Below, piece after piece: positions 628-28,292 of a stretch of 64,000 nucleotides of DNA. The position numbers were made by a program, and so were the translations under genes. The stretch is from positions 5,642 through 69,641 of the forward strand of contig NIVC01003921.1 in NCBI GenBank assembly GCA_002269645.1, read 5' to 3'. Source of the stretch: Macrostomum lignano. Lineage: Eukaryota. Position 1 is the stretch's first letter. Each line of letters begins with the position of its first letter. The notes under the pieces are model-generated. The model was given only the letters and a program-made list of their open reading frames with translations, searched no databases and was not told the DNA's origin.

Positions 628-3600
628 TCAAACTGTCAGGGTACCGTTAATGTACTTGGCCCATTCGATAATGTTCCTGGTGCAGACCACGCACCTGGCT
701 ATGTGGCCAGTGCCGCTCGCGTAGGTGAAGGTCTCCGATTTCAGCACGGGTTCCTCTGTCTCCGTGGCGCGCAGCCACAGGGTGTGAAAGTCTTTGAAGT
801 AGCCGCAGCTGCCCTCGCCTCGGCATTCGATGAACATGTTCTTCTTGAACCTTAGGCAGCTGCCTGGCGAGGACAGAGGCTGCACCGAATCTCCGGGGTT
901 TGGCGGCCGAACTGCGGTGGGGGCGACGGGTTGCTGCTTGTAGATGTCTGAGTGTGCTTGTGGATGGCTGAGTGTGCTTGTGGGTGGTTGAGTGTGCTTG
1001 TGGATGTCTGAGTGTGCTTGTGGATGTCTGAGTGTGCTTGTGGGTGGCTGAGTGTGCTTGTGGATATCTGAGTGTGCTTGTGGATGTCTGAGTGTGCTTG
1101 TGGGTGGCTGAGTGTGCTTGTGGATATCTGAGTGTGCTTGTGGATGTCTGATGGTGCTTGTGGGTGGCTGAGTGTGCTTGTGGATGTCTGATGGTGCTTG
1201 TGGGTGGCTGAGTGTGCTTGTGGATGTCTGAGTGTGCTTGTGGATGTCTGAGTGTGCTTGTGGGTGGCTGAGTGTGCTTGTGGATGTCTGAGTGTGCTTG
1301 TGGATGTCTGAGTGTGCTTGTGGGTGGCTGAGTGTGCTTGTGGATGGCTGAGTGTGCTTGTGGTGGCTGAGTGTGCTTGTGGATGGCTGAGTGTGCTTGT
1401 AGGTGGCTGAGTTTGCTTGTGGATGTCTGAGTGTGCTTGTGGATGGCTGAGTGTGCTTGTGGATGGCTGAGTGTGCTTGTGGGTGTCTGAGTGTGCTTGT
1501 GGGTGTCTGAGTGTGCTTGTGGATGGCTGAGTGTGCTTGTGGATGGCTGAGTGTGCTTATTAAGCGTAAATATAGTCATTGACAGTTTGATGCCAATAGA
1601 TACTCACTGTTAAGAGGCTGTGACCATCCCAAAGCGATCTCCATCCCGAGGGACAATTCGGCCTAGTATTGGTGTAGTTGTGAAATGCGTACACCTGCAA
1701 ATAGATGGAGAGTGGTGGTAACGAATGGATCTTTTTTTCGGTTTCTTAAAATTGATTTAAATACAGCGTACATTTTCTCAATGTACATTGCCTCAGTGCG
1801 TAGATGCTAATAAAGTAAACAATAGTTGCTACTAACCTTGCTGGGCGAATAGCACACGGCGCAACGACTGATGTACTGGGACATGTTCCTGTAGGTGTCC
1901 AAGTCCATTGCCATCTCCATGGTAACGGAGACGTCCGTGCTCAGCCAGTAGGACAGGCTGTTCCTCTGGGCATTGTGGCAGTTCTTGGAGTTCTCGCACA
2001 GGCTGAACGGCATTACGTTGAAGCGTCGAAGGCAGGAGCCGGGACTGCCGAGGTCGTAGACTTTGCTGTACGAGTTCGAGAACACCGACATGAACGAGTA
2101 GCCGGCCCAAAGGCGCTGCGTGCCGCTGGGACAGCCGGGAACGTCGGTCCGCTGACTGTGCAACGCGAACATGTCGCCCCGCAGGTTGCGACCCTCCGGA
2201 CCGCGGTCACCGTCGCTGCCCGGCTCGCCTTTGGAACCGTTGTCGCCGCCGTCGCCGTGATCACCCTGCTGGCCTTTTGGCCCCGGCGGGCCCTTGTCGC
2301 CAATGGGCCCCGCCTCGCCCAGGTCGCCTTTTGGCCCCGGTGGTCCTCGCGGACCCCTCCCGCCGGCAGGCCGTCGCGACCCTCTCGACCCGGCGCTCCC
2401 GGGTGCCTTTCTCGCCAACCTCGCCAACCTGGCCGACGCTGCCGGTCACGGAGTCGCCCCGTTCACCTTTCTCACCGTCGCTGCCCCGGTCGCCGACTTG
2501 GCCGCTCTGGCCGCGTGAGCCCAATCTGCCCTTGTCGCCTTTAAACCCGGCGACGCCTTTGGCTCCGCGTTCGCCCAGCTCGCCTTTCGCGCCAACTCGA
2601 CCGTCCGGACCGACCGCGCCCTTGCGACCCTGCTTGCCCAGCGGCCCAGACGAGCCTTCAACGCCTGTGACGCCTTTGTCGCCTTCCAGGCCTACGTTGC
2701 CCTTTTCTCCGGCCTGGCCCTTGTCGCCTTGCCGGCCCTTGATAGCGTCCTGACCCTTCAAAGCATCTTCACCGGCCTTGCCTTTGACACCTTTAGGTCC
2801 TGTGTCGCCCAGCTCGCCTTTATCGCCTTTCTGCCCGTCGGTTCCGGTTTCGCCTTTGAGCCCGACGTCGCCATCGCGACCCTTCTGGCCCCGGTCGCCC
2901 AAATCGCCCTTGTCACCGACCGAGCCCTTGCTGCCGGTGGCGCCTTTTACGTACACAGTGTTCACGTCACCGAGCTGGCCGCGGTCGCCCTTGTCCCCGG
3001 TGTCTCCGCTGTCTCCAGTGAAGCCTTTGTCGCCCACTGACCCTGTCGAGCCATTGTCGCCGCTAACGCCTTTCTGACCGCGCTCGCTAGCCTCGCCAAT
3101 CTGGCCTTTCAAACCTTTAGCGCCTTGGTTGCCAAACGTGCCTTTCCGACCGACGTTGCCGTCGCTGCCGTTGACTCCTGGCTCACCGACAGGGCCGCGG
3201 TCGCCTACCGGCCCCCTGGCACCCGTGTCACCCGGTGGACCCTGAGGACCGATGTCTCCGAGGTCGTCGCTGCGTCCGCCAGCCCCGCCGCGCATGCCTT
3301 TGGCGCCTTTCTCGCCCAACGGGCCCTTGGGTCCTCTGGGTCCCTTGTCGCCCGGTTGGCCATTCGGTCCCTTGTCGCCTAGGAAACCTTTGTAGCCTTG
3401 GTTACCGCGGTCACCCTGTGCAATATTTTTAATAATAACTGTAGTTTATATCCTTAAACTCCATTCTCTGTTCATGTGAATTGTGAACCAACCCCTTCTC
3501 TCCTGCTCCTATTTTCTTTTGATGAACGCTTAGCGCTCTGCCCCGTCCGTCATCTCTCTTTTTCTTATTCTCCTCTTCCCCTATGTACATGTAGGCCCAT

Positions 3601-27200: not shown

Positions 27201-28292
27201 GGCTCCCCCCCGCCCCACCCCCGGCCAATCACGACGCAGCTGGGGGAGGACAGCCCGGGAGGAGGGCCAAACAGGGCGGCCCAGCCAACCAGCGCGCAGA
27301 CAACCCCAAAGGGCTAAGCGGCTTACACTGCTGAGCCTATCACACCAAAAACAAATACGGAGCAGAGTGCACTTTAGCAGTGCAAGCGCACGGGCACAAC
27401 AACATAGCACAAAAACAAATACAGTATGCCGCGTGGGGCAGAGTGCACTTTGGCAGGACAAACGCAAGGGCACAACACAACGAAATTGGGATGTAAATAT
27501 TTCGCATTTTGTAGTTCGTGTGTTCGAACACTACCTGATTTAGAATCAATGTGGATCCTGGTTATAGCAGGGCGGAGTCACTTTTTAACGCAAACAAAAA
27601 GAAATCAAAGGCTTAACAAGGACTACAGGTTATAAATAGACGAGGACGTGACTACTTTAAATGGTTTAAAAATTGAAGGCCCAATTCAGCTTAAAGATGC
27701 ACCAAGCACGATAAGACGTTTTGGGCTTTCTTCTACCAGTAATTAGTGCAATCCCAAACACTGTCCGAGTTGGTCTACGAATCAGTAAGTAGAAAGTATA
27801 GACTGTGACGCGAAAAGCTTGCATGGCGGGCAAAGAAATGGCAGAAGAGGTCCTGTTCAGTCTAGCTAAAGGAGAATCCAGCCAAGCTGATGAAGCCAAG
27901 AAGGACAGAATTACCAAGTCTTAGCAGCATCGCCTCGAGTTCGATTCCATTTTTAGCTAGCTGACGCAAACTATAGTGCTGCTCATCCAGTAGAGAAGCT
28001 CTGACTATTCGTTACCCTCCATCTTCAGTACACAACCGGAGGCAGCGGCAGCGGCCAGGACCTGAACTCGCCTGGCAGCTGCCTGCAGCACTTCAGTTTC
28101 GCCCCAATGATGGAGTGCAACAATAACGGTGGAAAGTGCAACCACTGGAAGGACTCGATCAGCTACTGGCTGACGGTAGTGGCCGATGATGGCATGTTCA
28201 AGCGGCCAGTCAGCTCGTCGACCAGCTTTCCGGGAACAACGGACATCTATTCGAGGATAAGCCGTTGCACTGTGTGCAGACGGGGCGGTTGA
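12225..28292 (+). CDS. COL4A2: Type IV collagen alpha2-like chain (23 exons, about 1751 aa after correcting one frameshift)
   Basis: Exons: 12225-12250, 13732-13789 (signal peptide ..[19 protein letters not shown]), 13879-13938 ([18 protein letters not shown]), 14019-14153, 15009-15053, 15245-15307, 16012-16233, 16478-16681, 17038-17091, 17178-17285, 17578-18009, 18146-18504, 18841-18922, 19055-19170, 19254-19710, 20200-21098, 21695-21961, 22293-22575, 23120-23353, 23567-23701, 24498-24956, 25896-26188, 28029-28292; phases are consistent. NC1 features PFIYC, ERSYWL, PMPVA and ECNNNGGKC (C-x6-C) are alpha2 type. One-base deficit in the G run at 18421-18426. Confidence 0.93.
12438..13512. mobile_element. 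Non-autonomous hAT-like MITE in intron 1 of alpha2-like collagen, carrying an internal minisatellite
   Basis: Perfect 14-bp TIRs CATAGGCGTAGGAA / TTCCTACGCCTATG; flanks CATGCTTC and ATTGCTTC form a 6/8-matching 8-bp TSD. Confidence 0.8.
12630..13348. repeat. Minisatellite, 21-bp unit GCCTGCGGCGCTAAAATGAGT
   Basis: About 34 tandem units; explains ORFs 12380..13399 and 12585..13382. Confidence 0.97.
15505..15925. repeat. Minisatellite, 16-bp unit CACCGGTTCCCCAATT (32-bp dimers in centre)
   Basis: Tandem units read directly. Confidence 0.93.
18530..18820. repeat. C-rich minisatellite, core CACACTGCCCCACCCCTCCT
   Basis: Tandem units in intron after exon 18146-18504. Confidence 0.9.
19750..20170. 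repeat. C-rich minisatellite, core CACACTGCCCCAGCCACCCCTCCTCCT
   Basis: Tandem units; related to the 18530-18820 array. Confidence 0.9.
22665..22960. repeat. Minisatellite, about 12-bp unit ATTGGATTCCCT
   Basis: Tandem units read directly. Confidence 0.92.
24998..25848. repeat. Minisatellite, 15-bp unit GAGAGACGCAGTGGG with higher-order blocks, intron splitting the first NC1 subdomain
   Basis: Tandem units with repeated multi-unit blocks. Confidence 0.95.
26766..26990. repeat. Dispersed repeat segment with further copies at about 21200-21315, 37185-37430 and (inverted) 56690-56765
   Basis: Shared CAGGCACAC.CTCAC..GGAGTGTACAGCGGCCC..GGCATGTACAC..GCCTTGGGGG core; class not determined. Confidence 0.75.

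Follow-up and report, generated by a model that had tools for sequence, protein, structure and literature searches.

A head-to-head collagen IV gene pair in the flatworm Macrostomum lignano whose two chains both lack the lysine of the sulfilimine cross-link

INTRODUCTION

Head-to-head pairs of collagen IV (COL4) genes are conserved from ctenophores and placozoans through humans (PMC5395295), and the sulfilimine bonds of collagen IV, which are made with bromide by peroxidasin, are described as conserved from cnidarians onward and as essential to how tissues evolved; this view was put forward again in 2026 (PMC13098435). In the chloride switch described by Cummings in 2016, Arg76 and Glu175 form the salt bridge between trimers, Asp78 is the "off" partner, and Arg179 contacts chloride (PMC4878091). 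Here, we analyze a stretch of 64,000 nucleotides from the free-living flatworm Macrostomum lignano (contig NIVC01003921.1; this whole stretch is termed the window herein, and positions are counted from its first base). It contains two collagen IV genes arranged head-to-head, neither of which encodes a lysine at position 211, the acceptor position of the sulfilimine bond.

Several exceptions to the cross-link are on record. Collagen IV of Hydra is described as being without it (Fidler 2014, as cited in PMC5395295), and the Group II collagen IV of the ctenophore Mnemiopsis has neither Lys211 nor a sulfilimine bond (PMC5395295). The planarian Schmidtea mediterranea has seven COL4 genes, six of which keep Met and hydroxylysine (Hyl) and one of which, col4-3, is without both; flatworm COL4 chains group by themselves, apart from the standard alpha1-like and alpha2-like clusters (PMC8072372). 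Planarian COL4 genes are multiplied and unlinked, and Schistosoma has four, in rearranged loci (PMC12141075). The chloride site and the dependence on chloride vary as well, in flies, rotifers, ctenophores, and flatworms (PMC10694668, PMC10656227).

RESULTS AND DISCUSSION

Two divergent genes with a complete set of collagen IV parts

A six-frame scan revealed long open frames of Gly-X-Y triplets, one series spanning 14019 to 24817 on the plus strand and the other about 9955 to 2185 on the minus strand, and both terminate in sequence resembling the NC1 domain of collagen IV. Gene models were built by linking these frames via GT-AG splice sites, which are present at 35 of 35 introns across the two models (Table 1). 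The genes are transcribed divergently from ATG codons at 11116 (minus strand) and 11453 (plus strand), 337 bp apart as read from the sequence, and by analogy with COL4A1-COL4A2 the region between them is presumed to serve as a shared bidirectional promoter. An original prediction, made from the bare sequence, had placed two complete divergent collagen IV genes at 628 to 28292. Both limits fit to the base, the minus-strand TGA ending at 628 and the plus-strand stop codon at 28292, and the two divergent genes are there; they are not complete, as the assembled sequence contains frame breaks, which are treated below.

All parts of a collagen IV protomer and network are retained in both chains. Each begins with a signal peptide, followed by a Cys-rich 7S start in the plus chain and by the 7S cluster TCATEPCMC in the minus chain, and in both a further Cys lies about 85 to 90 residues downstream of the 7S Cys cluster. 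The helix comprises 463 Gly-X-Y triplets with 21 interruptions in the plus chain and 452 triplets with 28 interruptions in the minus chain. The Pfam C4 domain (PF01413) was found twice per chain, with E values of 3e-67 and 9e-60 and scores of 224 and 200 bits (cut-off, 27 bits), and each NC1 domain has 12 Cys, all in conserved alignment columns. The NC1 domains match collagen IV NC1 chains of human, bovine, and fly origin in the PDB with E values of 1e-54 to 1e-63 (1e-61 to 1e-63 for the plus chain). AlphaFold models of the two NC1 domains reached a predicted local distance difference test (pLDDT) score of 82.7 for the plus chain and of 82.1 for the minus chain, the latter with a predicted template modeling (pTM) score of 0.81. 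In a Foldseek search, the minus NC1 model matched collagen IV NC1 crystal structures with template modeling (TM) scores of 0.82 to 0.87 and E values of 1e-25.

The structures of alpha3, alpha1, and alpha5 ranked above those of alpha2 and alpha4 in this comparison. Likewise, in the PDB sequence search the minus NC1 scored higher with alpha1/alpha3/alpha5 than with alpha2/alpha4 (187 versus 160 bits). A firm alpha1 or alpha2 class for the plus chain was considered and rejected: its PDB scores are nearly equal, and its indel signatures are mixed. The same ambiguity is on record for Drosophila (PMC10694668). The pair had been predicted to consist of one alpha1-like and one alpha2-like chain; the minus chain is indeed alpha1-like, and the plus chain is alpha2-like by one indel signature and otherwise ambiguous. 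The pair thus joins an alpha1-like chain to another that has diverged deeply.

Both genes are already in UniProt as unreviewed, garbled predictions, A0A1I8FP35 (plus) and A0A1I8FP47 (minus; P0371), both from M. lignano. A search with the full-length plus protein returned one outstanding match, P0241 (UniRef100_A0A1I8FP35, 966 bits, "Collagen IV NC1 domain-containing protein", M. lignano), which shares identical stretches of at most 89 amino acids with our model, with frame-shifted garble between them. No paper on the A0A1I8FP35 and A0A1I8FP47 genes was found in the literature. Among the 150 matches listed from a profile search of 1.84 billion representatives, none was closer than 47 to 48% except these two M. 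lignano predictions.

NC1 domains without the acceptor lysine

Residues of the NC1 domain are given in human alpha1 numbering, which was verified on known residues, and were compared in HMMER and MAFFT alignments with 120 homologues. Position 211, a Lys in 111 of the 120 homologues, is occupied by Ser (plus) and Ala (minus), and there is no Lys within the loop. The claim that both chains are without Lys at the sulfilimine acceptor position is thereby confirmed; a broad collagen IV alignment places no Lys at 211 in either of them. The other partner of the bond persists: Met93 is kept in the minus chain, and a Met of the plus chain aligns with alpha2 M93 (NPMPVAD versus PMMPVAE), one column off in the alpha1-based alignment. 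With Lys211 missing from both, no Met93-Hyl211 bond would be possible between them.

The departures described here might in principle be artifacts of the gene models, for instance if two frameshifts close together or a wrongly chosen exon masked Lys211. Indel errors are demonstrably present in the assembly, and the minus gene is ambiguous at its last acceptor. The region of position 211, however, lies in both genes within one open exon, between the conserved W190 and the RC..C motif. A hidden Lys211 was looked for in the other two frames of either gene and rejected, as no TLKAG-like sequence was present. The older predictions have the same SETFTY in the minus chain and agree with our model over an 89-amino-acid stretch of the plus NC1, and the composition statistics given below come from more than 900 triplets and could not result from a few indels. 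We regard this explanation as highly improbable.

Changes are also found around the chloride site. Asp78, present in 114 of the 120 homologues, is replaced by Glu (plus) and Ser (minus); position 179, which is Arg, Lys, or His in 103 of the 120, is Gly (plus) and Glu (minus); Glu40 is replaced by Gly (plus) and Ser (minus); and Ser75 and Asn77 are partly changed. The N187 column holds Asp in these chains, N187 being specific to deuterostomes. R76 and E175, the residues of the salt bridge, are retained by both chains. The predicted alteration of the chloride-site motifs thus holds for D78, R179, E40, and S75/N77 but not for the core R76-E175 pair, and from the aligned residues the site is re-engineered only peripherally, with its core intact.

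One HSQ motif is altered in each chain (HSM and HSQ in the plus chain, HSQ and HNY in the minus chain). Identity between the two NC1 domains is 37.5%, and that to other collagen IV is 40 to 47%, compared with 60% between human and fly alpha1. The neighbors of the pair are ordinary genes, with a B56 gene about 86% identical to its human counterpart, so that it is the collagen genes, and not the lineage as a whole, that evolve fast. Since there is no extra Cys in either NC1 domain, a disulfide loop of the ctenophore type is excluded.

The minus chain carries a 14-residue extension past its last NC1 Cys (window 628-672, minus strand), which includes an N-G-T sequon and zero Cys. This C-terminal tail forms a helix in the AlphaFold model; canonical chains stop 3 to 5 residues past that Cys.

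Among the homologues, a group of NC1 domains (P0034, P0038, P0049, P0050, P0052, P0078, and P0093) is without Met93 and Lys211 and keeps ASRNDYSYWLS. The one member with a name, P0038, belongs to the fish Lucifuga dentata, suggesting a COL4-like paralogue without cross-linking residues, possibly in teleosts.

A proline-poor helix enriched in sequons

Proline makes up 8.1 and 8.3% of the helix residues in the two chains, compared with a median of 21.3% in 60 NC1-bearing homologues; rotifer collagens have about 12%. At Y positions, where Pro can be converted to hydroxyproline, Pro accounts for 8% (plus) and 10% (minus) of residues and Lys for 35% (plus) and 27% (minus), and Lys, Asp, Glu, and Arg together make up about 30% of helix residues in both chains. 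Mutational bias was considered as the source of a Lys-rich, Pro-poor helix and rejected: the coding sequences have a GC content of 62 to 64%, with 66 to 68% at third codon positions, which opposes the AAR codons of lysine.

KGD and KGE together occur 84 times in the plus chain and 45 times in the minus chain. Expected numbers of K-G-[DE] steps were obtained by shuffling the X and Y residues 5,000 times. The plus chain has 82 such steps against 55.8 expected, a number that none of the 5,000 shuffles reached; the minus chain has 43 against 37.9 expected, which 730 of the 5,000 shuffles reached, so that the excess is not significant. A Pro-poor, KGD/KGE-rich helix had been predicted for both chains; the scarcity of Pro applies to both, and significant enrichment of K-G-[DE] is limited to the plus chain.

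Sequons of the type N-G-[ST] show the clearest excess. Within the triplet runs there are 13 in the plus chain and 11 in the minus chain against 1.6 expected, an enrichment of about eightfold in both that was reached in 0 of 5,000 shuffles for either chain; homologous helices hold 0 to 3 N-G-S/T sites. Two-thirds (plus) and half (minus) of the Asn residues at Y positions are part of such a sequon, typically in the context G-(D/E)-N-G-(T/S). Counted over the helix, the number of sequons is 17 per chain, and over the whole proteins it is 18 and 20, in agreement with the 17 to 18 first counted in or beside the helix.

Canonical 7S chains carry a C-N-G-T glycosylation site at the Cys downstream of the 7S cluster. 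Both M. lignano chains keep this Cys, and the sequon has been replaced, by CEGK in the plus chain and CSGR in the minus chain, as the original prediction had it. The context that recurs along the helices is that of the canonical 7S site that both chains have lost.

The helix contains seven Cys in the plus chain and two in the minus chain, and Cys in interruptions is normal in collagen IV. Extra Cys in the interruptions had been listed among the changes shared by the two chains, a view that these numbers do not bear out, as the change is neither parallel nor unusual.

An interruption of 21 residues is present in both chains at a similar distance from the N terminus (plus chain, residues 240-260, 16592-16654 on the plus strand; minus chain, residues 247-267, 8509-8447 on the minus strand). 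It may be a conserved hinge or binding site.

Frame breaks in the assembled sequence

Neither gene is intact as assembled. Four single-base frame breaks and one out-of-phase splice junction were found (Table 1). At every break, one added base in a G/C run recovers the uninterrupted Gly-X-Y register, and all of the sites contain CCGG. The repaired frames have zero further stops and keep all glycines, cysteines, and splice sites. The phase mismatch at the last acceptor of the minus gene is probably a fifth lost base; P0371, with LLT just ahead of the junction, uses the same acceptor for this intron. The older M. lignano predictions of both genes have far more frame errors, and different ones, and the indel pattern of P0241 differs from ours at the G-rich spot at 18426. 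Since the breaks lie in G/C runs, are mended by one base each, are accompanied by no other stops, and are matched by different errors in the older predictions, we read them as assembly errors, probably residual errors of the long-read type.

Real short introns or programmed frameshifting at the breaks were considered and rejected: the gaps are 0 to 30 nucleotides (nt), and each is mended by one base in a G/C run. More sweeping would be the view that the genes were recently inactivated, with real breaks and with the odd residues as products of decay. It could draw on the four breaks and the phase-mismatched splice site of the given sequence and on the several conserved NC1 motifs that are altered, but about 915 triplets keep their Gly, 24 of 24 NC1 Cys are in place, 35 of 35 introns have GT-AG, and the repaired frames are without stop codons. 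Sequons and ion-pair motifs are enriched far above chance, a mark of selection; moreover, one base is missing from a G/C run at each break, as is typical of residual long-read error, and the independent older prediction differs in its indels at the same site. Pseudogenes are thus a very unlikely explanation.

The breaks look like systematic long-read errors, and other GC-rich genes of the same assembly may be affected.

Comparison with known collagens and proposed assembly

Taken together, the sequence evidence inclines us, by a modest degree, to regard the locus as a functional, strongly derived gene pair of the COL4A1-COL4A2 type. It resembles the canonical pair (human, Nematostella, Trichoplax, and Drosophila Cg25C/viking) in its divergent transcription, short shared region, and 7S Cys cluster (PMC5395295, PMC4878091), and also in an interrupted helix of about 1,400 to 1,500 residues, an NC1 domain of two C4 units with 12 Cys, and the residues R76 and E175. 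Unlike the canonical chains, the M. lignano chains have no Lys211, have D78, R179, and E40 replaced, and show an NC1 identity of just 40 to 47%; their helices differ in having 8% rather than about 21% Pro, 27 to 35% Lys at Y positions, and 17 sequons, and in the loss of the 7S C-N-G-T site.

In the assembly that we propose, the chains would still trimerize via their NC1 domains and join head-to-head into hexamers via the R76-E175 bridge. The hexamer would be held noncovalently, as in Hydra, without the Met93-Hyl211 sulfilimine bond, and the chloride switch would be modified, both its "off" residue Asp78 and the chloride-contacting Arg179 being replaced. Helix stability would probably come from the Lys at Y positions (27 to 35%) paired with Asp or Glu at X positions, forming K-G-D/E ion pairs between chains; likely glycosylated hydroxylysine would add to it, as would probably about a dozen N-glycans per chain at the G-(D/E)-N-G-(T/S) sites. 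The outcome would be a softer, noncovalently joined network, as has been suggested for Hydra. A heterotrimer held by salt bridges, glycans, and disulfides had been predicted. Of these three, candidate sites for glycans are enriched in both chains and K-G-D/E steps for salt bridges in the plus chain only. Disulfides as a replacement are not borne out: each NC1 has the 12 canonical Cys and no extra loop, and helix Cys number just seven and two.

Hydroxyproline-free triple helices stabilized by charge are formed by K-G-E and K-G-D host-guest peptides and by the streptococcal collagen Scl2. The M. lignano helices share with these a low content of imino acids and a charged fraction of about 30%; Lys(Y)-Gly-Asp/Glu(X) steps are frequent as well, with significant enrichment in the plus chain only. 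Unlike them, the Scl2 and peptide helices are bacterial or synthetic and have no interruptions, NC1 domain, or network, so that the likeness extends to possible helix stabilization only.

Hydra offers a second parallel. An NC1-bearing Hydra collagen, P0242, is Pro-poor as well (10.6% Pro, 9.2% Lys), and both animals are small, soft-bodied, and very extensible. Hydra, however, is a cnidarian and Macrostomum a bilaterian, and the bond is described as conserved in Bilateria; P0242 also has additional WAP and vWA domains, and the sequence affinity between the Hydra and M. lignano chains is at the family level only. In ctenophores, Met93 is gone along with Lys211, and an extra cysteine loop leads to disulfide-linked dimers, whereas each M. 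lignano NC1 domain stays at exactly 12 Cys and is without that loop. Planarian col4-3, which was compared by its description, is a flatworm chain likewise without Lys211, but it is one of seven, the genes of which are unlinked, while in M. lignano both head-to-head partners are affected. The loss of Lys211 had thus been described before in related or more distant taxa (Hydra, Ctenophora, and planarian col4-3). We did not find described in the literature a bilaterian head-to-head pair with both partners lacking Lys211, a collagen IV helix with as little as 8% Pro, or strong sequon enrichment.

Several observations count against the pair as a functional, derived counterpart of COL4A1-COL4A2 with this mode of assembly. 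In principle, the breaks in the reading frames may be genuine. Several otherwise near-invariant motifs of NC1 have changed (HSQ to HSM or HNY, GYS to GHS), which might reflect relaxed constraint rather than adaptation. The K-G-[DE] excess of the minus chain is not significant, and stabilization by ion pairs and glycans leans on work with peptides and bacterial collagen. In addition, several COL4 genes are common in flatworms, and of the seven of Schmidtea only col4-3 is without Met and Hyl (PMC8072372, PMC12141075).

This last point leads to another explanation, namely, that the pair is a specialized extra one: canonical COL4 genes with Met93 and Lys211, together with peroxidasin, would lie elsewhere in the duplicated genome, and the pair described here would form a minor or tissue-specific network without cross-links, like col4-3, by the same chemistry as proposed above. 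The COL4 loci of planarians and Schistosoma are multiplied and rearranged (PMC12141075), flatworm NC1 hexamers fall into two populations that differ in their dependence on chloride (PMC10656227), and NC1 domains with 40 to 47% identity to any homologue are far more diverged than the neighboring genes, as is typical of released paralogues. On the other hand, the head-to-head layout with ATGs 337 bp apart is the ancestral organization of the primary pair (PMC5395295), and the two chains, at 37.5% identity, are as far apart as the ancient alpha1 and alpha2 classes, which does not fit a recent duplicate. Among the 150 matches listed from the search of 1.84 billion representatives, the only NC1 proteins identified as M. 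lignano are these two, a weak argument given that most matches are nameless. Further M. lignano COL4 paralogues were sought among the listed homologues by way of Pro-poor helices; the named Pro-poor matches were from Artemia and Oryzias, and the rest were nameless. We consider a specialized extra pair a substantial possibility, if short of probable. Canonical paralogues elsewhere in the genome, if present, would make this locus one more specialized COL4 paralogue pair of flatworms.

If the pair is instead the functional counterpart of COL4A1-COL4A2, as we are inclined to think, M. lignano may build its basement membranes without sulfilimine bonds, perhaps without dependence on peroxidasin, and without helix stability based on hydroxyproline, using ion pairs of Lys with Asp or Glu and N-glycans, of which each chain would have about a dozen. 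We put this forward tentatively, as a proposal that is rather more likely to fail than to hold. Were it true, it would be the first whole-network exception in Bilateria to the conservation of the sulfilimine bond from Cnidaria to humans, and the helix would be a natural collagen IV helix stabilized by glycans and charge. A genetically tractable, regenerating bilaterian in which both paired chains are without the acceptor Lys would provide a natural test of a basement membrane free of the bond. The helix composition suggests that an animal network collagen may reach triple-helix stability by another route, with relevance to the design of collagens and to the understanding of matrices that are soft and extensible, the mesoglea of Hydra among them.

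TABLE 1 Coordinates of the collagen IV gene pair, its frame breaks, and repeat arrays in the window
Feature	Position(s)	Strand	Details
Plus collagen IV gene	11453..28292	+	22 coding exons, 1748 amino acids after one repair; from Gly-X-Y frames and GT-AG sites
Coding exons, plus gene	11453-11535; 13884-13938; 14019-14153; 15009-15053; 15245-15307; 16012-16233; 16478-16681; 17038-17091; 17178-17285; 17578-18009; 18146-18504; 18841-18922; 19055-19170; 19254-19710; 20200-21098; 21695-21961; 22293-22575; 23120-23353; 23567-23701; 24498-24956; 25896-26188; 28029-28292	+	
NC1-coding part, plus gene	24830..28292	+	24830-24956, 25896-26188, 28029-28292
NC1 key codons, plus gene	25979-25981; 25985-25987; 26033-26035; 28113-28115; 28128-28130; 28224-28226	+	In order: R76; D78-equivalent Glu; M93-equivalent Met; E175; R179-equivalent Gly; K211-equivalent Ser
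Minus collagen IV gene, alpha1-like	628..11116	-	15 coding exons, about 1769 amino acids after repair; from Gly-X-Y frames and GT-AG sites
Coding exons, minus gene	11116-11015; 10617-10570; 9955-9785; 9704-9552; 9030-8891; 8741-8664; 8554-8375; 8024-7809; 6875-6782; 6564-5972; 5840-5637; 5357-3981; 3415-1837; 1694-1608; 911-628	-	
NC1-coding part, minus gene	628..2172	-	2172-1837, 1694-1608, 911-628
NC1 key codons, minus gene	1965-1963; 1959-1957; 1914-1912; 828-826; 816-814; 720-718	-	In order: R76; D78-equivalent Ser; M93; E175; R179-equivalent Glu; K211-equivalent Ala
Region between the ATGs	11117..11452		336 bp; presumed shared bidirectional promoter and 5' untranslated regions
Downstream 7S Cys, plus chain	15293-15295	+	In GERGCEGKA
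Downstream 7S Cys, minus chain	9647-9645	-	In GEPGCSGRP
Break in plus exon 11	18416..18432 (~18426)	+	GGTCCGGGGGGCCGCAG, six-G run; one added base mends the frame
Break in minus exon 5	8963..8979 (~8970)	-	GGCGACCCGGCTACATT; one added base gives GDPGDPG(x)YIGFPG
Two breaks in minus exon 13	2353..2410 (~2400 in 2388-2410, ~2365 in 2353-2372)	-	36 nt apart; one base each mends the frame
Last acceptor, minus gene	905..923	-	CCCCCACCGCAG/TTCGG at 911 (slash, splice boundary); best acceptor, one base off the phase of the best donor ACA/GTGAGT at 1608
Minisatellite arrays	935-1558, 7073-7772, 9083-9486, 10026-10479, 12633-13348, 15500-15957, 18527-18823, 19759-20169, 22668-22978, 24995-25846		Many more up to 58.5 kb

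Other features of the window

Rfam and tRNA scans of the 64-kb window found nothing. A GC-rich block at 40400-42100 (56% GC, compared with 33 to 45% around it) holds overlapping open reading frames (ORFs) on both strands; one ORF motif, LLRLNRRDLRAVSMALSGHGCFSRH, resembles the C-terminal region of ORF2 proteins of non-LTR (long terminal repeat) retrotransposons, with no Pfam match.

Minisatellite arrays occupy many introns, of the collagen genes and of their neighbors, and some intergenic stretches (Table 1). Their units are 12 to 43 bp long, with higher-order periods of up to 284 bp, and occur in about 10 to 57 copies with 78 to 99% identity. Some arrays are related to one another, for example, those at 9083-9486 and 10026-10479, and the arrays yield long spurious ORFs on both strands.

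Three neighboring genes, all on the minus strand, were recognized. A gene of the TFCP2/grainyhead family lies at 33916-36974, with a CP2 exon at 34801-35364, which is 58% identical to vertebrate TFCP2L1 and 56% identical to insect sequences, and a SAM_3 exon at 33916-34347. The gene for the mitochondrial ribosomal protein uS5m (MRPS5) is found at 47907-50078, its N-terminal uS5m domain spanning 49515-50078 and the two S5 domains, N- and C-terminal, lying within 48521-48988. The third, at 52967-59831, encodes a B56 regulatory subunit of PP2A and includes an exon of 158 amino acids (56967-57536) that is about 86% identical to human B56-alpha, showing that housekeeping genes of the host are conserved relative to the collagen pair.

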